From assembly GCA_021613535.1 (NCBI GenBank), contig CP075493.1:4216001-4280000 (forward strand): 64,000 bases of DNA, given 5' to 3'. Shown here piece by piece: positions 5,772 through 22,038 of this stretch (position 1 is its first letter; each line of letters starts with the position of its first letter). The position numbers were made by a program, and so were the translations under genes. The stretch comes from Adineta vaga. Lineage: Eukaryota; Animalia; Rotifera. Under the pieces are notes generated by a model that did no database searches, was not told the DNA's origin, and saw nothing but the letters and a program-made list of their open reading frames with translations.

Positions 5772-6780
5772 CAATTGAATACAATAAGAGATAATGTCGA
5801 GAAAGGATGACAGTACTTAATAACTCGTATGTGTAAATGCATGCATGAAAATCAACTTGAATCAATGTCAATAAACATGAACGAAAGGGTAAAGAGCAGT
5901 GACGCAGTCACCTGCTAAGCGAATGCCTGACTATTTATCCTTGTAAGAGAGGATTTTTTTTTCTCTTCAATGAACATCACAATCAATCTTCTATCACATG
6001 GATGATAGTGAATCTATAACTTGTATTTTTCTTTTCTTCACTATCATTTCATAGTGACAGAAACAGAACGAAAGAGAATGTTCTTTTTCTTTCTCGGTTG
6101 TGATATCTTATACCAATCGGATAGATATAGTGATGATCAAGGGTATCGTTCGATTTTTTTCTCGTTCTTATGAATAATCGTAGATAAAAGTTATTCGACA
6201 GAAAGATTCACATATACAAAAAAGGTTATTAGAACACTTCAAATTGGTTGAAACCTGTACATCGAATAATCCATAGATCGAGAGAAAGAGATTTGGTCAA
6301 TATGTACGAAAGTTAAACGGCAACTTTTTATACCAAATCAGGAAGGTACAGAAGAAAATATAACGTCGTAGAATACGAGAGAAGATAAAAAATATTGTCT
6401 TCAAATATGACATTGTAATGAATTGTTTCACTACGAAAAATGACAAAGGAATTTGATGATAGTGTTTGAATGTTACCAATCTGTTTTTCTTGACATTCAT
6501 TATAATACAGAATATCTATCAGATGTTCACGATGGAAGTCAAATTCTCTTAACTCATTGTTTGTAATATATATATATGAGCGAAAGAAGACGAAATGAAA
6601 AATAATATCACCAATGGTTTTATTATGGATTGTCCGTCTTGATGAAATATTGCACAATCATTTGAAATACATTCTATTTACTGTTTTACATTGACAAACC
6701 CACATGGAAGAAAAAAATGACTCTCGTCAAATAAATATAAGGTTCAGATTTTAACAGAACAATATATTTAATTAGATTTG

Positions 6781-7323
6781 ATGTCATCACACAAACGAGC
6801 TTTGATTATTGGTATTAATAAATATTTATGTTATTCATCGAAATATTGTGTAAACGATGCCAATGATTTGAGTATGACTCTTCAACGTATAGGTTTCGAA
6901 ACACATATCGCATTCGATTGTAATTTACGTGAATTTGGCGATCATATCAATCAATTTCTTCAATTAATTCAACCGAATGATGTAGTATTATTTTATTTTG
7001 CTGGTCATGGTAAATATAATCGATATGAATATTATTTATTACCATCAGATTACATTTATAATTTACGAACTGATCAGTATGATTATATCATACGAAATGC
7101 TATTAATAATCTTATGAAAAAAATTCATAAAAGTAAATGTTCTATTCCGATTTATCTATTTGATTGCTGTAGACTTGTAAGAGAAACTCGAGCGACAAGT
7201 ACCAATGATCGATTATTGTTGTTGTTTGAAATGGTTGATCATTATAATTATCGACTACAGCAATTTGATATTGAAAAAGATTATATTAGACGAAGGATAC
7301 TGATTTCCAAAAGATTTCCATAG
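6781..7323 (+). CDS. Bacterial/paracaspase-type caspase p20 domain (peptidase C14), truncated; possible pseudogene
   Basis: KRALIIGINKY, CVNDANDL, FYFAGHG (catalytic His) and FDCCR (catalytic Cys). No recognisable p10 half follows DCCR. Confidence 0.7.
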   Translation: MSSHKRALIIGINKYLCYSSKYCVNDANDLSMTLQRIGFETHIAFDCNLREFGDHINQFLQLIQPNDVVLFYFAGHGKYNRYEYYLLPSDYIYNLRTDQYDYIIRNAINNLMKKIHKSKCSIPIYLFDCCRLVRETRATSTNDRLLLLFEMVDHYNYRLQQFDIEKDYIRRRILISKRFP

Positions 7324-10412: not shown

Positions 10413-11745
10413 TTATGATATTGTCGTAGTTTCTGGTTCTACACTAGTAGTTTCTCCCGGTGTTGTTGTCGTAGTTTCTGGTTCTACACTAGTAGTTTCT
10501 CCCGATGTTGTTGTCGCAGTTTCTGGTTCTACACTAGTAGTTTCTCCCGGTGTTGTTGTCGTAGTTTCTGGTTCTACACTAGTAGTTTCTCCCGACGTTG
10601 TTGTCGTAGTTTCCGGTTCTACACTAGTAGTTTCTCCCGGTGTTGTTGTCGTAGTTTCTGGTTCTACACTAGTTGTTTCTCCCGGTGTTGTTGTCGTAGT
10701 TTCTGGTTCTACACTAGTTGTATCTCCCGATGTTGTTGTCGCAGTTTCTGGTTCTACACTAGTAGTTTCTCCCGGTGTTGTTGTCGTAGTTTCTGGTTCT
10801 ACACTAGTAGTTTCTCCCGATGTTGTTGTCGCAGTTTCTGGTTCTACACTAGTAGTTTCTCCCGGTGTTGTTGTCGTAGTTTCTGGTTCTACACTAGTAG
10901 TTTCTCCCGACGTTGTTGTCGTAGTTTCCGGTTCTACACTAGTAGTTTCTCCCGGTGTTGTTGTCGTAGTTTCTGGTTCTACACTAGTTGTTTCTCCCGG
11001 TGTTGTTGTCGTAGTTTCTGGTTCTACACTAGTTGTTTCTCCCGATGTTGTTGTCGTAGTTTCTGGTTCTACACTAGTAGTTTCTCCCGGTGTTGTTGTC
11101 GTAGTTTCTGGTTCTACACTAGTTGTTTCTCCCGGTGTTGTTGTCGTAGTTTCTGGTTCTACACTAGTAGTTTCTCCCGGTGTTGTTGTCGTAGTTTCCG
11201 GTTCCATACTAATGGCTTCTGTCGTTGTTGTTGTTGTTGTTGTGGTGGTGGTGGTGGTGGTAGCAGTGGTAGTTGTTAATGTATGTCCTAAAATAAGAGA
11301 GAACTCCTAAGGTTCAAAGCATTCGGGTGACATATATCGAAATTTTCAGTTAATTTCTTTCGATTTTCGGGCATCAGCACATTACCTGTAGCCTCAGTCG
11401 TACTCATCGTTTTTGTAATTGATTCTGTTGTAATCAAAGTTACTTTTGTTAAATCAGCATCTAAAAATAAAGAAATACGAGTTTTCTCTTGCAAACATAG
11501 TATTGATTATATACTTGTTGACTTTGTCTTTTTCGACAGGACAATACTAACGGGAATAACAATCGCAAAAGCAACAATGATAGTTAGTGTAATACTCAAA
11601 ATCATCCATAATTGCTTTCGTCCAATTAGTAGGGCTCTAGTTAATATAACTTCCTTTTTATTATATCTGAAATAGGAATAAGAAAAAAAAATACATACCT
11701 GGTTCTCAAAGATGATATCGACGAACGATAAATATTGCTTCGCAT
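10413..11745 (-). CDS. Type II membrane mucin-like protein with 15-aa Thr-rich repeats
   Basis: ATG at 11745 (MRSNIYRSSISSLRT), intron, TM exon (LWMILSITLTIIVAFAIVIPVSIVL), Thr-rich exons, then the (EPETTTTTPGETTSV)n array. Confidence 0.75.
10431..11205. repeat. 45-bp tandem array, ~17 highly homogeneous copies
   Basis: Unit ttctggttctacactagtagtttctcccggtgttgttgtcgtagt, with only a few SNP variants. Confidence 0.97.
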
Positions 11746-12557
11746 TGATAAATACTAAGACTATCAAAAAGAGAAGAAGACTATTAGATAATTAAAATAA
11801 CTAACAATATTATTTGAATTATTAATATGATAGATTTTTTGTTCGAAACAAAATCGTTTACGTTTAATTACGTCGTTCTTTTTTTCTCAATAAAATAAAT
11901 CTTGAAAACAAAATGGGAGTATTGCTAATCTAGACCATCTGTTATTTTCATTTTTTTTTTCAGTCTCTATCTATTTTTCAATGAGAACATACTATCTACC
12001 AATAGTCAGTTACTTACTAATATGAATCATATACAATGCTAAAAAATATTGTAAGCAGAAAACGTTTTTTTTTACTTAATTGATTTATTTGTATGTGTGT
12101 GTGTGTGTGTTCAAATGAAAGAGATTTGCTGATATTCATGGATGCTAAGCGATGCAAAGATTGAATCGTGAGATTTTTCCAAACTGTATACATAATTCCC
12201 TATACATTTTGAAATAGAGTATAACGAATTATAATGATGACTATAATACATATCATCTGCGAATGGAATTGAACGAAGAAACTGCTTTCAAAATCTGAAT
12301 CGGTTTTTGGATTGTATCGGATTTCATTTCAAATATGCATGGTGAAAATTGATCTTTAGCAAGAAAACAACTACAAGTACCTGTGACTGCTTGTTTCTAT
12401 TGATATTTCTCAAATTCTCAATTTTGTTTTGTCATCATCAAAGAACCACTTAATATTCACTTCAAAATTTGTCAACTTTAAAGACAAATACACTTCAATT
12501 CTTCGCTTATAAATACGTGAATATCCGTAATATTACTAATACAAATTTACTATATTC

Positions 12558-14003
12558 ATGGCTTATCGAAATATCGTTCATCCGGCTGCTTATGATATAG
12601 AATACTATATTCCTCCTAGAACTCGCGTAGTACAAAGAGAAACGTACGATAGCTATCCGTAAGTAATATTCAATGTATTTTTCTCTTGATTATATCAAGA
12701 ATCTATTTGTAAATGTATAAGACGAAGAAGTTCATGGTATGGTGCATGTTCTTGGTGTAGTCTTTGGTGTTGTTTGCTTTCATTGCTTGGTGGTCTATTG
12801 CTTGCTGCTGGATTAGCTGTAGCACTTGTGTTTATTATCAGATCGGCTAACAAAGATGAAACAACACAGACAAGTAAATTTGAAACTTGTTCATTGTGAA
12901 TACGTTAAAAAATGATCAAACATTCGCTTTAGCAATCAGACCTATAATAACACTAACAACTCGAACATCAACTACAACAACTAGCACAACAAGTATAGTT
13001 TGAGAAAATAAATCAATCTTTGTTCTGAGATTTTCGCTTAATCATTTACTTAAACTTCTTATATTTCAGCGACCACTACCACATCGAGTATAACGACAAA
13101 TGAAATAACTCTAATTTCAAGTTTGACCGATGCTACAAGTAATGAATAATCTTATTTAATGAAAAATAAAAACTATTCTTTGATTTTCAGATTCGTGTTA
13201 TTATGGTGGTGATCTTATTCATTTACTCGATGGAACATATAAACGTATTGATCAATTACAAGTCGGTGATCGTCTTTGGTCACTTACAAAAGATGGTAAA
13301 CGAATAATTGAAGATGAAATGATTTTAATGATGTATGCTGACGCAAATAATTCAAGTAAATATATATTATATACCATTAAATCTGTAGGATACTTATCAA
13401 TCTTTAGTTCTCTTCTATACATTTACAACATATGATGGTTATTCAATCAGTTTAACAAGCAATCATTATATTATAATATTCGATAGTGAACATAACAAAA
13501 TAATGTATATCAGTGCTTCGAAAGTAACACAAGCACATCATCTTATCCTTTCAAATCGTACAAGTCAAATCAAAAAAATAAACAAGTCTGTTCGTAAAGG
13601 TTTCTATTCGCCGTTAACTCTTAGTGGTAGTTTACTTGTAAATAATATTTCCACATCGGTTTATATTGCCAAGTAGCTATAAAATATCCTTTAAAAAAGA
13701 AAGCAACATAATATGTTAATCTTTATCTGTTTGTTTAGTTATGGAATATCTCCTGAAACTTTTCATAAAATATTCACACCAATTCGAATTTATTATCGTT
13801 TTACGCGATGGATATTTGGAAATGATTATAATCCCTATACAAATTACTTAAAACATGGTCTACATCCATTAGGTACTTTTCTCAAAGCTAATCAAAATCT
13901 TATTTGTATTCTTCTTGTATTTGAAAACAATATTCTATGGATACTTCTTACTCTTCTGATTATCTATTCAACTCAAAAATATCTTCTCGTGAAATCAACA
14001 TGA
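12558..14003 (+). CDS. Hedgehog-type Hint/Hog autoprocessing-domain protein with N-terminal TM and Thr-rich linker (7 exons; mostly missed by the ORF track)
   Basis: Exon 1 MAYRNIVHPAAY..; TM exon ~12722-12873. Exon 13191-13355 gives S-CYYGGDLIHLLDGTYKRIDQLQVGDRLW (Hint block A). Exon 13408-13672 gives ISLTSNHY (TxxH block B) and GFYSPLTLSGSLLVNNISTSVY. The last exon has FHKIFTPIR..GLHP (sterol-recognition-like) and a hydrophobic tail. Confidence 0.85.
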
Positions 14004-15821: not shown

Positions 15822-17404
15822 ATTGCCTGAAAATAACAGTTAAATATAAAGAAAGCTCTCTCAGTTACGTATATTCTTCGTCAAACAAAATTGATTGATA
15901 TCTGTATGTTAAATATGAATGTGTTCTACGTACACGTGTCGTTCATAGTTTAAAACGAAACATGTATATACCATTTATTTCGATTTTTTCGTACCGAAAT
16001 ATATGACGATATAATATGAAAAAGAAATTGATTGTCCTTCGTTATGCATAATGAAGGATTTCTATCAAACATGAGAAGAAATGAATTCATCCATGACCGG
16101 AGAGAGAAAAATATAATATTCAGCAATAAGCATGTATAAATCTTATGTATAAGTTTATTATCACACATCGAGTAACAACTTACACAGTTATTCAGATAAT
16201 GTTTTATCCTTGAGAAACTATTTTAAAACCATCGTTCAAGTGTGCCGTTCTCAATAAACTAGAAGTACAAAAAATCAAGAGAACAGTCATTTTTTTTAAT
16301 AGAACCGAAATGAGAGAAGAGTACATTTCTGTGTGAATTCCTTTGTATTCATCTATCATCGAAAGAAAAACACATATACATCAACAAAGTTGTATTTTCA
16401 AGAACGATTACGCCATCATGGTACAACAAGAATAAGACACAATAAATTAATTCATTTTTCAATCTTTCTATATTTCTACATTACATTCATTCTAAAATAT
16501 TATTCGTTAATATGTATCACGTTGTTGTTGTTGTTTTTGTTTACGTTTCGAAGGAGAAAAAAAATATTGTCTCTTTTCCTGTTTAGCTCAATATAGCAAA
16601 GTTTGTTTGTGTTTTTAATAATGTGATAAGATACACACGAGAAAGAAACATCTTTTAAGATGTAATCCTTGTGACGATTTCTGATACAAGAGATGATTTA
16701 TGATATATGTATCTTTTATTTGACCCAAAGAAATCGTATCTATATTGTTTTTCCTCGTCCTTATATAGTTCTCGGTACATTCAATGTCACGCTACAGAAA
16801 AATATCAAACTTCATAAGTAATATGTAAAATCTATTGATATCACTAAGCGAGGTTATGGATAAAAGAAACATGCGATCAAAGTTTGTTCTAAGGGAAGAT
16901 AATCTATGTCAAGCATGAGGGGAAAGTACCAACATATCATAAGAAGTAGGAAGAGGGTATACAATCATTTAGATTGTCACAATCCTATATGAGACAGAAT
17001 GAAGTCCTACAAGTCTCGGCAAAGAAGACCTATTAATCATCATTGTTTATAACGATCAGTTTCTTTTGAATAGAAGCTCTGCTAAAAACACTCGATATTT
17101 GTGACGAACATTTGCTGCGATGGATACTAATCCAGAAAACAATGTATCAAAATCCATTGTCGTACATTCAGAAGATAGAGTGGCATTACGTTAGTTCTCA
17201 AAGTTCTTGTTTATTTACTCATGCTTTGTAATGTTTAAATATCTTTTTAGCACCTGCGGAAGCATTGATTCATACAAGCGATGAAATAAAAATAGAATCA
17301 TCTCCGGTACAAACTGCAAGAACGTACTCTTTCTCTCTCAATGAAATGTGTCGATTGTAACAAATTAATTGACTATATTTCTTCTTTATGAATTACTAGA
17401 TAAT

Positions 17405-19267
17405 ATGAATTTATTTAGATATTTTCAATGTACAATCATACTTGTTTGCATATGGTATACAGCATCAGTTGGATTTAATTTATATCTTCAAAAATTGTTT
17501 AATAGAAATCAACATACAGAAGATATTTATTCTTTAGTATGTTTAACTGCATTTATCCAAAATTTAACATGTTTTTTCGGTGTAATTCTATCTTATTTTA
17601 TCTCAAAACTGAAAATCTATCAGTTATCATCGAAAGAAGTATCTCTTAAGATTGAAAAAGAAAAACGATGTTGGATAGTATTCATCGTTGCTGGTTTATT
17701 TCATTGTCTTGGTATTATGATAACCAATTATCTCCTATCTTTATCAAACATTTCCTGTGTTCATACTATTCGTGCATTAGAACCATTAATCGCTAGTATT
17801 CTTATCTATTTCATTCCAATACCGAATCAAACAAATTCCAATTGGAAAACTACAATTTTCGAGAAACTTTTCGGAATTATTCTAATGATTAGTGGTGTCA
17901 TTTTATCGACATCACGTAGTGGTCAATGTCAATTCTTAAGTACACTTATCTATCTTGGATTATTGACGAATTTCTTATGGGTTATTCGAAATATTTGTAT
18001 TCAATATATCAGAATACATATGAATGAGATCTTTACTCAGATGATTATCTATGGAATTAGTACAATCATATCATTTTCATTGATGATAATTCATCGTTTT
18101 CCTTCATTGTTATTAGAAAATCATTGGAATCTTTTAATTTTCATTGGTCTATTAAGTTTGATTTATAATAGTACATCAATAATTGTTTGCAATCGAGTTA
18201 ATTTAGTTTCACATAGTTTATTAACAATGTTAAAACGACCGATTCTTATTATTGTTTCATTGATTTATTTTGATCACCATTTAAATGTAATGATTATTCT
18301 TGGTACTATTCTGATTCTACTCGGTCTTTCCTTCTATAAAATGAATTTAAGTCAACAATTATCAATTTTTCATGAGAAATTCTATGTAATTACACTTTTT
18401 ACAATAATTCTAATTGCTAGTTCGAGTTATTTATTTCATTTGAATACACATCATTCTTTACAGATGAAAACAATTCGTATGAGAAAAGACTTTCCTTTGT
18501 ATTATTGGACACCTGATTCAAAAAATGATAATTTTGGTGATACATTATCATATATTCTTGTTAGATCAATTGTTGGTCCACAATTAGCATTCATTAATAC
18601 GAAAGATCGAAGATCTTATTGTAAAAAATCGAAATTATTAGCAATTGGAAGTATATTTCAATTTGCATGTAAACATGATGTTATATGGGGTTCAGGAATA
18701 TTAAATCCAACAAAATTTCCGTTTTTCAACAATTCTCGTTTGATCAACACAATTGATATTCGTGCTGTTCGTGGACCACGAACACGTAATGCTTTAATAG
18801 CAAAGTATAATATTGACGTGCCAGAAATTTATGGTGATCCAGCATTATTATTACCATTTTATTTGAAATCTTATAAAAAATCTGTGAAATCAATCATTCC
18901 TATTCTACTAATCCTTCATTATAAAGATGCTAAACAAAGGAGAATTCATAGTGAATTAAAAAAGATTGTTACTGTCGATGCTTTTTTACCATGGGAAATA
19001 CTTTTGAAAATGATTCTTCAAAGTGAATTTGTGATTTCAACATCCTTACATGGTCTTATTGTTTCTGAAGCATTTGGTATTCAAGCAAGATTCTTAAAAT
19101 CATCATTAATCAATGTATTTCAATTTCATGATTATTATGAAGGTACAAATCGACCATTGGAATTTGCAACGACGATTGATGAAGCAATTGCTATGGGAGG
19201 ACAACAATTACCGAAGATTAATCTGACGAAATTATTAAATGCTTTTCCGTTTGATAAATTTGCTTAG
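17405..19267 (+). CDS. Fusion: triose-phosphate/PEP-translocator-family (SLC35E/TPT) transporter + polysaccharide pyruvyltransferase (ExoV/PS_pyruv_trans-like)
   Basis: Uninterrupted 620-aa ORF. The N-half has 10 hydrophobic helices with TPT motifs (WYTASVGFNLY, FHCLGIMITN, HTIRALEPL, VSHSLLTMLKRPILII) plus an 11th helix. The C-half has NFGDTLS, LAIGSI, IWGSG, IRAVRGPRT, YGDPALLLP, STSLHGLIVSEAFGI and FQFHDYYEGT. Confidence 0.88.
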   Translation: MNLFRYFQCTIILVCIWYTASVGFNLYLQKLFNRNQHTEDIYSLVCLTAFIQNLTCFFGVILSYFISKLKIYQLSSKEVSLKIEKEKRCWIVFIVAGLFHCLGIMITNYLLSLSNISCVHTIRALEPLIASILIYFIPIPNQTNSNWKTTIFEKLFGIILMISGVILSTSRSGQCQFLSTLIYLGLLTNFLWVIRNICIQYIRIHMNEIFTQMIIYGISTIISFSLMIIHRFPSLLLENHWNLLIFIGLLSLIYNSTSIIVCNRVNLVSHSLLTMLKRPILIIVSLIYFDHHLNVMIILGTILILLGLSFYKMNLSQQLSIFHEKFYVITLFTIILIASSSYLFHLNTHHSLQMKTIRMRKDFPLYYWTPDSKNDNFGDTLSYILVRSIVGPQLAFINTKDRRSYCKKSKLLAIGSIFQFACKHDVIWGSGILNPTKFPFFNNSRLINTIDIRAVRGPRTRNALIAKYNIDVPEIYGDPALLLPFYLKSYKKSVKSIIPILLILHYKDAKQRRIHSELKKIVTVDAFLPWEILLKMILQSEFVISTSLHGLIVSEAFGIQARFLKSSLINVFQFHDYYEGTNRPLEFATTIDEAIAMGGQQLPKINLTKLLNAFPFDKFA

Positions 19268-19569
19268 ATATTTTTTGAGAAAATGTTCGTTTTTTCGTTT
19301 TATCATAAAATAAAAAAGTCATATATAGCAGAACATATTTTCTCTAGTTAGATTATTCATATTATATCATTCGAAGGAAAATATTCGATTAACAAACTTT
19401 CTGACATGTCATCGAGATAGTTGTGCTTTGTTCACTAGCTTTATTTGAAAAGGTGAATATTTAGTCGAATAAAACTACAAAATCTACAGATTTAATGTGT
19501 ATAATGACTTATTAAAATAACTAAAAGGTAGAACTATTACGAGAGAGATTTATATGTTAAATAATCTGT

Positions 19570-22038
19570 TTAATTCATTTGAGATATACGTTGTTTTTGT
19601 TGTTCAATTTGTGTACGAAGATCTTGAGGTAAATCTTCACCTAATTGTCCATCAAGCCATAACAATGTTTCTTCAATATCATCTTTCCAATAATCTCTTG
19701 GTACATTCATTAATTTATCCCAATCAACAATGAGTCCTTGCAGATTAATTGAATCTTTCTTCGGTAAAAGACCAACTGGTGATATTTCCGCAATATCGTC
19801 ACCATTTGTTCGTCGAATAATCCAATCGAGAACACGAATATTATCACCTAGAATAGATTACAATTCAAGAAAATTTCCTTATAAAATGATCTTTTTTTAA
19901 ATTCTTTTATACCAAATCCAGGCCAAAGAAATTTCTTATTTTCATCCAAACGAAACCAATTGACATGAAAGATTTTGGGTAACTAAACAAAATACATTCG
20001 AATAAAATTTCCACAACAAAATGTTAACTTTATTCTTTGGATCTTTTTCAAAATCTAACCAATGTTGAATGTAATGTCCAAAATTATAACCAACAAAAGG
20101 TCTAAATAAAATAACAATCATTTGATTGTTTTTTTTCATCGATGAATAATGATCATTACCGCATAGCAAATGGATCATGCATAATTTGTTTTCCTGTATG
20201 TTCAGCTGCTGCTGTTGTTTCAGATTTCAATTGTGAAGCAAGAAAGATTCCATGCTTCCAATCGAATGATTCAATAACTAATGGAACACCATCAGGTCTT
20301 CGGCCGCCAAAAATAATTGCTGAAATTGGTACACCATCAGGATGTTCCCATTTGTCATGTATAATAGGACATTGTCGAGCTGGACAACAGAATCTTGAAT
20401 TTGGATGACTGGATTTTTTTGTTTTATCTTCACCTAATTTATATCGTTCACCTGTCCAAGAAATAATTTCTGTTCCTGCTGGTGTTTCATCTTCAAGACC
20501 TTCCCAATAGAATCCACCATCAGCTGTTTCACCGACATTTGTAAATATAGAATTTTTCAAACAAGTTAAAATTGCATTTGGATTTGTTTTCATATTTGTA
20601 CCGCTATAGAGAAAACAAAAAAAAACATAAAATTATTGTTAGTATTAAATCTTACGGTGCAACACCAAAGAAACCAGCTTCAGGATTGATGGCTCGTAAT
20701 TCTCCTGTTTTCTTATCAAATCTCATCCAAGCAATATCATCACCTACGCAACGAACTGTATAACCGGGAATCGTTGGTGTTAACATTGCTAAATTTGTTT
20801 TTCCACATGCGGATGGAAAAGCAGCAGCAATAAATTTCTCTTCACCTTTTGGATTTGTTACTGACATAATCAACATATGTTCAGCCAGCCCTTGAGAAAA
20901 ATAAATAAACAAATTAGACAAATAAATCAAACTTTTTATCAAATATCTTACATCCTTCATCATAAGCAATACGACCAGCAATACGTAATGCAAAACATTT
21001 TTTACCAAGTAAACTATTTCCACCATAACCAGATCCATAACTAATTACTTTACGAATATCAGGAAAATGACAAACCTAAAGTTAAAAAAAACGAGCGATC
21101 ATTTCAAAGATTCTGTGTAACGATAGATGGCGCTAAATGACGTGTAAAAGACTTTTTTTTTCGTATAAGTGCTTATTTACCAGAGTTTTTTCTGGATTGC
21201 ATGGCCAGTTATTGATAATTTTTTGTGTATGTGGACGAGGAACACCTACGTAAATCTGGATATTTATTTCGAAAACAAGAAAAAATCAAATTAATATACC
21301 CATTGAATGAAGACATTTCACAAATTCCTCATTATGTTGAAGGCATCTCCAAATTGTCGGTGAAACACGAGTCATAATTCTCATTGAAAGTAAAACATAA
21401 TTTGAATCCGTCACTTGTACACCAATTTTACTCAATGGTGAACCAATAGGTCCCATACTAAATGGAATAACATACATCATACGTCCAGCCATACATCCAG
21501 GAAGTCGTTCATCTAATTCATTTTTCATATCAGCAGGTGCCATCCATTGACCAAGTACACATTTAACACCTTCTCGTGAATGTGGTATCGATGCATATTT
21601 ATCATCAGTAACAATATATGTTTTAGATTCAACACGAGCAACGTCCTTCAAAACAAAAAGATCGAAGAATCTATGAAATAAAACTTCAATAAACGATCTT
21701 TTCTTACACGAGGATCTGTCCAACAGATGTAACAATTTTCATATTTTGTTAATTTTGTCAATGTACCACGTTCAACTAACTTATGTGTAATCATTTCGGC
21801 TTCCGCATCCGATCCATCGCATATATACACAGCACGAGGAGTGCATAATTGTATCTAAATTAACATGAATGATTATAATGTGGAAAAAAATATTCTAAAT
21901 AGTTCGAACCATTTGAGCAAGCCATGATTGTACTTGTAGTGGAAGTGATTGAAAATCACCTTTTGTTACTGGTATATCACCAACTTTTTGGATGGTTACA
22001 TAGTGAACTTCAACGAACGAAACATTCACGTCCTCCAT
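19570..22038 (-). CDS. PCK: Phosphoenolpyruvate carboxykinase (GTP), multi-exon
   Basis: [83 protein letters not shown] and HDPFAMRPF. The acidic N-terminus [11 protein letters not shown] shows no mitochondrial presequence. Confidence 0.97.

Follow-up and report, generated by a model that had tools for sequence, protein, structure and literature searches.

We analyzed a stretch of 64,000 nucleotides (nt) from chromosome 1 of Adineta vaga, a bdelloid rotifer (C1:4216001-4280000; below, the window), the plus strand of which carries a gene that joins a carrier of the TPT family to a pyruvyltransferase domain in a single chain. The coding sequence consists of three exons (17120-17189 + 17251-17356 + 17419-19267) and encodes 674 amino acids (aa); the NCBI model I4U23_001332 has the same protein sequence (100% identity). 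Both Pfam domains, the TPT carrier and PS_pyruv_trans, score above their cut-offs in one frame, with an eleventh hydrophobic helix (helix 11) between them, in agreement with an earlier note on this DNA that had been made from its letters alone. The features of the gene are listed below; residues are numbered in the large open reading frame (ORF) from the ATG at 17405, and adding 54 gives the numbering in the 674-aa protein.

17120..17189, plus strand: exon 1, start codon and first 23 codons, a hydrophilic N-terminal tail (tblastn of the database model P0001, RNA joint 17189->17251)
17190..17250, plus strand: intron 1, 61 nt, GT..AG (spliced contig of run X4)
17251..17356, plus strand: exon 2, remainder of the N-terminal tail, predicted to be cytosolic (tblastn, RNA joints)
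17357..17418, plus strand: intron 2, 62 nt, GT..AG, holding the ATG at 17405 (spliced contig of run X4)
17419..19267, plus strand: exon 3, the entire carrier, helix 11, linker, enzyme domain and stop codon (ORF, tblastn, RNA contigs)
17438..18337, plus strand: TPT-family 10-helix carrier, ORF residues 12-311, with phosphate-site positions R123, Y254, K277 and R278 (PF03151, Foldseek, family profile)
18368..18436, plus strand: eleventh hydrophobic helix, ORF residues 322-344, proposed to act as a tether across the membrane or to derive from a signal anchor (hydropathy, model)
18437..18484, plus strand: flexible basic linker or stem, ORF residues 345-360 (pLDDT <50 over 343-360)
18485..19264, plus strand: compact PS_pyruv_trans domain, ORF residues 361-620 (PF04230, domain model with pLDDT 91.5, fold match to Pvg1p)
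19121..19121, plus strand: variant site, with C (Gln573) in the assembly and A (Lys) in one contig of RNA run X3 (RNA contig table, computed codon effects)

Gene structure and transcription

The stop-free frame runs on the plus strand from 17369 to 19267, in DNA that is AT-rich (GC ~28-30%), and counts 632 codons from a TTG or 620 from the ATG at 17405. The earlier note had described it as one stop-free and intron-free ORF starting at this ATG. The frame is free of stops, and exon 3, the one large exon, does contain both domains; the gene, though, has two 5′ introns, revealed by spliced RNA contigs, and the proposed start codon falls inside the second of them. A contig of run X4 carries the splice joints 17189->17251 and 17356->17419, both GT..AG. 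These joints reproduce the 674-aa database model (P0001), and tblastn of P0001 onto the window gave the same exons; the 54 residues by which the model exceeds the ORF map to the two small upstream exons. Searches and structure predictions used 17405-19264, that is, exon 3 plus five intron-encoded residues at its start, while the joined three-exon model served solely for checking the frame, the length and the first residues against P0001.

Four sequencing runs with parts of the stretch are RNA; all four show contigs of a neighbouring phosphoenolpyruvate carboxykinase (PEPCK) gene that skip CT..AC introns. Over exon 3 we observed RNA contigs at 17739-17928, 18364-18533, 18608-18960, 18964-19184 and 19122-19286. 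They lie over both halves of the fusion, with a low depth of 2-5. In the region 18340-18500, singled out earlier as the place to look for RNA across the junction, the contig 18364-18533 runs through the boundary between helix 11 and the enzyme domain and has zero mismatches. The whole coding sequence is covered by no single contig in the four runs, and a single transcript is for this reason consistent with the data rather than proven.

Incomplete contig coverage is the one observation in favour of an artefact, in which two adjacent genes or contaminant DNA were taken for one frame. We consider this extremely improbable: 632 codons stay free of stops in AT-rich DNA, the introns are spliceosomal, the locus lies in an 18-Mb chromosome-scale sequence next to the spliced and highly expressed PEPCK gene, the same fused frame is present in a paralog, in Rotaria and in distant eukaryotes, and one contig extends across the domain boundary. 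This is a real and conserved gene that is spliced and, at a low level, transcribed.

Contigs of three runs leave the window at 18968 and 19191. Alternative splicing was rejected as a cause, with neither GT nor AG present at either place; the letters past these points match unrelated places on chromosome 2 (8.70 and 9.09 Mb), and these ends are most likely contig chimeras.

Carrier half, helix 11 and enzyme domain

The carrier half matched Pfam TPT (PF03151) over residues 12-311 with 45 bits against a cut-off of 30. Hydropathy analysis gave eleven hydrophobic segments, the last of them at 326-344 (the FYVITLF...SSSYLF helix, peak 1.97). In the full-length AlphaFold model, built on a 60-row alignment with a predicted local distance difference test (pLDDT) of 88, ten long helices are followed by a helix at 315-350, a disordered segment at 343-360 and a globular part at 361-620. 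A TPT-family carrier in an animal genome and the presence of an extra eleventh helix, both claimed in the earlier note, are thus borne out, and so is the retention of the basic and histidine motifs (LFHCLGI, HTIRALEP and LKRP). In a Foldseek search the best match of the carrier was 5y78, the triose-phosphate/phosphate translocator of Galdieria (E 6.5e-10, TM-score 0.80 by target), followed by SLC35B1, the CMP-sialic acid transporter and Vrg4. When 15 carrier halves were combined in a profile and searched against PDB, the first hit was the same (5y78, E 5.8e-30), ahead of SLC35B1 (8e-7) and a GDP-mannose transporter (2.2). Word-index searches with the carrier half, both as a single sequence and as a profile, returned family members only and no named canonical TPT protein.

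In the Galdieria protein, GsTPT2, phosphate is bound by Lys204, Tyr339, Lys362 and Arg363 (bioRxiv 10.1101/169169). The equivalents, read from HMMER alignments with a chain-to-residue offset of 89, are R123, Y254, K277 and R278. K277 and R278 are invariant in 15/15 carrier sequences, with Y254 present in at least 90% of the 15; at the R123 position all non-bdelloid members have Lys. Retention of this tetrad suggests that a phosphorylated substrate is exchanged for phosphate and speaks against a nucleotide sugar; judged by conservation, we consider it good evidence for such an exchange. The rotifer carrier resembles the plastidic phosphate translocators (TPT, PPT, GPT and XPT; GsTPT2, 5y78) both in the 10-helix fold of the drug/metabolite transporter (DMT) type and in the four phosphate-binding positions.

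A hydrophobic stretch is present at the place of helix 11 in all aligned fusion proteins. In 11/11 full-length fusion proteins lysine plus arginine (K+R) is richer in the predicted cytosolic loops than in the predicted luminal ones, and in most of the 11 helix 11 is preceded by a more basic flank than the one that follows it. Among the nearest stand-alone enzymes, several start at the N-terminus with a hydrophobic anchor or a segment resembling a signal peptide, after which come a short stem and the catalytic domain. Joining such an anchored enzyme to the cytosolic C-terminus of a 10-helix carrier would yield exactly 10+1 helices with the enzyme in the lumen. A luminal enzyme domain therefore fits the predicted charge distribution as well as the anchors of the stand-alone relatives.

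The enzyme half matched PS_pyruv_trans (PF04230) over residues 400-564 with 53.8 bits against a cut-off of 25.3, which confirms the pyruvyltransferase domain of the earlier note. Folded alone, the domain reached a pLDDT of 91.5 and showed a two-lobed GT-B-like fold as in Pvg1p. Pvg1p was also the best solved structure (5ax7 chain A, by VIA-align: Z 14.1, root-mean-square deviation (rmsd) 3.8 Å, 219 residues aligned), followed by a Klebsiella protein of unknown function and then by UDP-sugar 2-epimerases and GT-B transferases (Z 10-13). An ESM Atlas cluster of 260-residue bacterial pyruvyltransferases superposes on the domain with a TM-score of 0.87 and an rmsd of 2.2 Å.

Comparison with 60 relatives showed invariant or nearly invariant residues in NFGD (376-379), GS (415-416), WGSG (428-431), RGP (456-458) and GDP (477-479), with further conserved residues at S-L-H (547-549), D576 and R583; 12 invariant and 19 nearly invariant columns are kept, and most family-invariant residues of the enzyme are conserved. 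Docking and mutagenesis in Pvg1p/CsaB identified R217/R148, R337/R306, H339/H308 and K361/K328 as binding phosphoenolpyruvate (PEP), and D106 as a residue on the acceptor side of Pvg1p (PMC4872226, PMC10435577). In a mapping made by motif rather than by residue superposition, His549 fits H339; His549 and Arg456 (of RGP) are both invariant, as is Asp379 of NFGD.

Proposed mechanism and its alternatives

The best available reading of these data is the mechanism put forward in the earlier note, for which the phosphate site argues on the carrier side and family and fold on the enzyme side. The protein would sit in a Golgi or endoplasmic reticulum (ER)-type membrane with the carrier's two termini on the cytosolic side, and helix 11 would take the enzyme domain into the lumen. 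The carrier would swap cytosolic PEP for luminal phosphate; the enzyme would spend the imported PEP, place a pyruvate ketal on a glycan and free phosphate, which would in turn be the counter-substrate of the carrier. Each transfer would thus bring one PEP in and send one phosphate out. The data show the architecture, the splicing, transcription at a low level and the folds, and that the phosphate site and most family-invariant enzyme residues are conserved; the membrane in which the protein sits, its orientation, its PEP cargo, the transfer of pyruvyl and the glycan that accepts it are what we infer. With moderate confidence we favour the view that the three-exon A. vaga gene is functional and that its 674-aa chain of tail, carrier, helix 11, stem and enzyme supplies itself with donor for glycan pyruvylation.

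The logic proposed here has a precedent in the Golgi of Schizosaccharomyces pombe, where the pyruvyltransferase Pvg1p needs the PEP transporters Pet1p and Pet2p (PMC4872226, PMC6801904). There, too, PEP import into the Golgi feeds a membrane-tethered luminal pyruvyltransferase; transporter and enzyme are separate proteins in yeast, whereas they form a single chain in the rotifer. By this analogy, the rotifer gene could be regarded as a fused form of the yeast Pet1/2 and Pvg1 arrangement. Unlike Pvg1p, the rotifer enzyme domain is compact (~260 residues), has no detectable sequence match to the yeast protein and carries Ser in place of the Arg of R-L-H.

Several observations weigh against the mechanism. 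Those on the carrier side concern the part of the pocket that meets the organic portion of the substrate, which in GsTPT2 comprises His185, Thr188, Phe192 and Phe263; in PEP-preferring PPT, an Asn stands in place of Phe263 and makes room for the C3 methylene of PEP (bioRxiv 10.1101/169169). At this position, which discriminates PEP from triose phosphate, we found Trp192, and in relatives I, M, M, T, L, V and F; His185 is not kept either (I104). With the pocket residues uninformative, PEP as the cargo is suggested by the fused enzyme and not by the carrier. The NCBIfam model TIGR00817 (tpt) gave 26 bits against a cut-off of 317.9, which places the protein outside the plastidic subfamily as NCBI defines it. 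The rotifer protein differs from the plastidic translocators in this score and in these two residues, as well as in coming from an organism without a plastid and in its extra helix and enzyme.

On the enzyme side, the Arg of the R337-L-H339 motif is Ser or Ala throughout the clade of the fusion (Ser547 here), and by this replacement the clade departs from both Pvg1p and CsaB at the R-x-H motif. No match to Pvg1p was detected at the sequence level, with a single sequence or with a profile. A search of PDB with the enzyme half as a single sequence gave nothing at E 10 or better; a NADAR match obtained with the 60-sequence profile (E 0.98) was set aside as chance, and no pyruvyltransferase was found. 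The link to Pvg1p consequently comes solely from the comparison of folds.

These observations bear on the possibility that the architecture is right and the chemistry is another, i.e. that the carrier moves 3-phosphoglycerate (3-PGA), triose phosphate, 2-phosphoglycerate (2-PGA), a sugar phosphate or phosphate alone, and that the GT-B-like domain transfers a group other than pyruvate. It would agree with the Trp in place of the PEP-selective Asn, at a position variable in relatives, with the loss of His185, with the absence of the R-x-H Arg from the clade and of a link to Pvg1p or CsaB at the level of hidden Markov models (HMMs), and with the epimerases and glycosyltransferases that follow Pvg1p among the fold matches (Z 10-13). 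We regard it as unlikely nevertheless, given that PF04230 scores above its cut-off, that the named members of this family reviewed in PMC6801904 are PEP-using pyruvyltransferases, and that Pvg1p is the single best structural match; besides, phosphate released by PEP-dependent transfer would be a natural counter-substrate for a strict phosphate antiporter.

A further point against the proposed function is the Lys located 24 residues after the His, which is kept in 59/60 relatives and is Gln573 in the assembled haplotype. The variant at 19121 is linked to T19103C (Ser567Pro) in the same contig of run X3, and both changes give the family consensus; Lys573 and Pro567 on an RNA contig indicate that the conserved residues are present in at least one expressed allele or strain. 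One could suppose that the window copy is decaying or has acquired a new function, that the assembled allele has lost a PEP-binding lysine and that function resides in the paralog at C1:11.21 Mb. Low expression and a third copy, on chromosome 4, that has already been reduced to a remnant with a stop codon would be in line with this, as would Gln573 and the Ser567 that replaces the consensus Pro. We see only a small chance for such a decay: the 674-codon frame is intact, spliced and transcribed, the other invariant columns are all kept, and the Lys573/Pro567 contig restores the consensus in at least one expressed allele.

The orientation, too, has its weak points. Helix 11 was modelled with low confidence (helix 315-350, pLDDT ~60), and the window copy is exceptional in its flanks, with a K+R count of 2 before helix 11 against 4 after it. 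Characterized bacterial PF04230 enzymes, moreover, act at the cytoplasmic face on lipid-linked (lipid-PP-linked) precursors (PMC6801904). The enzyme domain might accordingly be cytosolic, with helix 11 peripheral or re-entrant, a lipid-linked or cytosolic acceptor of the CsaB type, and the carrier an anchor or an exporter of the product. Such a topology appears rather improbable to us. Helix 11 is a run of 19-23 strongly hydrophobic residues found in all fusion members, the flank preceding it is the more basic one in most of them, and several of the closest stand-alone relatives have signal peptides or anchors; also, an enzyme using PEP in the cytosol would need no fused carrier of the phosphate type.

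To be counted on the same adverse side are the low expression with the missing full-length contig, mentioned above, and the absence of any report of a pyruvylated glycan from rotifers in the literature that we searched. The luminal, PEP-fed pyruvyltransferase remains the reading that we prefer.

Occurrence of the fusion and neighbouring genes

The A. vaga genome has two intact fused copies, the window gene and I4U23_003633 at C1:11.21 Mb, with 53% identity. These are both of its PF04230 loci, and an unfused PF04230 gene was not found in the genome. The chromosome 4 remnant (L003, C4:15015686-15018802, matches at ~1364-1862) is a decayed enzyme half that gave three short matches, each in a different frame, and contains a stop codon. 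The fusion is also present in Rotaria species, as a single exon in a contig of Rotaria sp. Silwood1 (L008, 1-2260), and the ORF is conserved between Adineta and Rotaria.

Outside rotifers we found the same domain order in the basidiomycete fungi Mixia osmundae (XP_014566838.1) and Sporobolomyces blumeae (GAA6060577.1), in the transcriptome of Amoeba proteus (EukProt) and in further eukaryotic proteins, two of which lie on AT-rich contigs of 238-365 kb (L004 and L005; 24% GC) that carry homeodomain, P450 and split sulfotransferase genes. The Mixia, Sporobolomyces, Amoeba and Rotaria proteins share with the window gene both the order of the two domains and the hydrophobic helix between them; their full-length identity is only 24-28% and none of them has a described function. 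In one relative (locus L007) the reading frame changes between the halves, where a GTTAGT donor is found; judged by the sequence, the frame change looks like an intron and not like a gene boundary. An ESM Atlas cluster of 60 members (PF04230 in 97%, PF03151 in 93%) is labelled eukaryotic, most often Mollusca, a label that is unconfirmed and serves as a lead only.

A tree built from 92 enzyme domains grouped the fusions of bdelloids, fungi and Amoeba in one clade with a support of 95 in the Shimodaira-Hasegawa-like approximate likelihood ratio test (SH-aLRT). The fusions from the AT-rich contigs and the protein P0178 were placed elsewhere, among stand-alone enzymes, one of which has a plainly bacterial gene neighbourhood. 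Forcing the enzyme halves of all fusion proteins into one clade cost 213 log-likelihood units (p 0.0002 in the approximately unbiased (AU) test). One explanation is that the pairing arose more than once; another is that fissions, transfers or truncated gene calls have blurred a single origin. Halves that are paired in distant eukaryotes while the enzyme halves are not monophyletic are what one expects if the pairing is functionally favoured.

The presence of the full fusion in fungi, in Amoeba and in other eukaryotic contigs implies that it predates bdelloids. The suggestion of the earlier note that the enzyme half alone was acquired horizontally is not supported, with the complete fusion found in two basidiomycetes, in Amoeba proteus and on other eukaryotic contigs; judging from these sequences, the fusion was not made in rotifers, nor was the enzyme half added alone to an animal carrier. 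Bdelloids either inherited the fusion or took it up already fused. Uptake from a fungus-like or protist donor would be more in keeping with known gene uptake by bdelloids; outside Rotifera, the full-length relatives with a named source come from fungi and an amoebozoan and belong to one clade with the bdelloid proteins, while the Atlas cluster labelled Mollusca is unconfirmed. In bdelloids the gene would then have gained introns and been duplicated. For bdelloid biology, it would be either another foreign gene with gained introns and a duplication or an overlooked spiralian gene.

The fusion is not rare, yet we found no paper describing it. Literature on pyruvyltransferases in combination with rotifers, bdelloids, molluscs, TPT or fusions did not describe the architecture. 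This natural fusion lends independent support to a connection of Golgi PEP import with pyruvylation, which until now has been established only in fission yeast.

Pyruvate ketals lend glycans a negative charge similar to that of sialic acid. Pyruvylated glycans of animals include glycolipids of sea hares and the glyconectins (proteoglycans) of sponges (PMC6994554, PMC6801904); no animal enzyme for glycan pyruvylation is named in these two papers or in other literature that we found. The family of TPT-pyruvyltransferase fusions is a concrete candidate for this role. A wider reading, which we advance tentatively and hold to be possible though somewhat doubtful, is that the fusions are a recurrent eukaryotic invention, assembled more than once, that couples PEP import, luminal pyruvyl transfer and phosphate export 1:1 in one chain; the family could also be the enzyme behind the pyruvylated glycans of sea hares and sponges, and bdelloids a further pyruvylating group. 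An importer and a transferase in a single chain would also be a compact part for the engineering of charged glycans, a use to which Pvg1p has already been put (PMC4872226).

The bacterial ketal-pyruvyltransferases CsaB, WcaK and ExoV belong to the same Pfam family, PF04230, as the rotifer domain, and relatives at 38-44% identity sit in bacterial gene neighbourhoods. Bacterial PF04230 enzymes are stand-alone or fused to GT2, GT8 or GH130, and not to a TPT carrier. The nearest stand-alone enzyme from bacteria (contig L010, 8001-11306) is followed by two GH130-like genes, and in other relatives the pyruvyltransferase domain is fused to GH130, GT8 or GT2. This context points to putative mannoside-type or other polysaccharide acceptors in that bacterial branch. 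On a 693-kb metagenome contig (L006) a relative at 6001-7128 breaks off shortly past helix 11, its alignment reaching ORF residue 387 where the enzyme domain begins, and the sequence downstream showed no enzyme half; a different PS_pyruv_trans-like gene of 643 aa lies at 11549-13128, 4.4 kb off, on the other strand.

The gene next to the fusion in the window, arranged tail-to-tail with it, is the following.

19424..21038 and beyond, minus strand: GTP-type PEPCK, outside the fusion (PEPCK-like ORFs, spliced CT..AC joints, poly-T end)

Its introns are at 19846-19910, 19983-20028 and 20102-20159, its contigs reach a depth of ~100, compared with 2-5 over the fusion gene, and its poly(A) site, seen as a poly-T loose end in run X1, is near 19424, ~157 nt from the stop codon of the fusion gene. 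PEPCK copies of A. vaga are located at C1:4.24, C4:9.69, C3:9.84 and C6:6.14 Mb, none of them close to the paralog (C1:11.21 Mb); the orthologue in Rotaria has GH76 and C1 peptidase genes beside it and no PEPCK. A metabolic mini-cluster of PEPCK and the fusion gene was rejected for lack of this adjacency at the paralog and in Rotaria, and we attribute the neighbourhood to chance because it is not conserved.

The Rotaria orthologue (L008) lies ~5.7 kb downstream of two tandem GH76 genes. GH76 is known mainly from fungi and bacteria, and these may be more foreign genes.

Upstream of the fusion gene, the region 16700-16983 is transcribed at a contig depth of ~15-19, and this transcribed part ends near 16983. 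Several RNA contigs differ there from the assembly at 6-8 places per ~200 nt, which suggests a divergent allele or strain.

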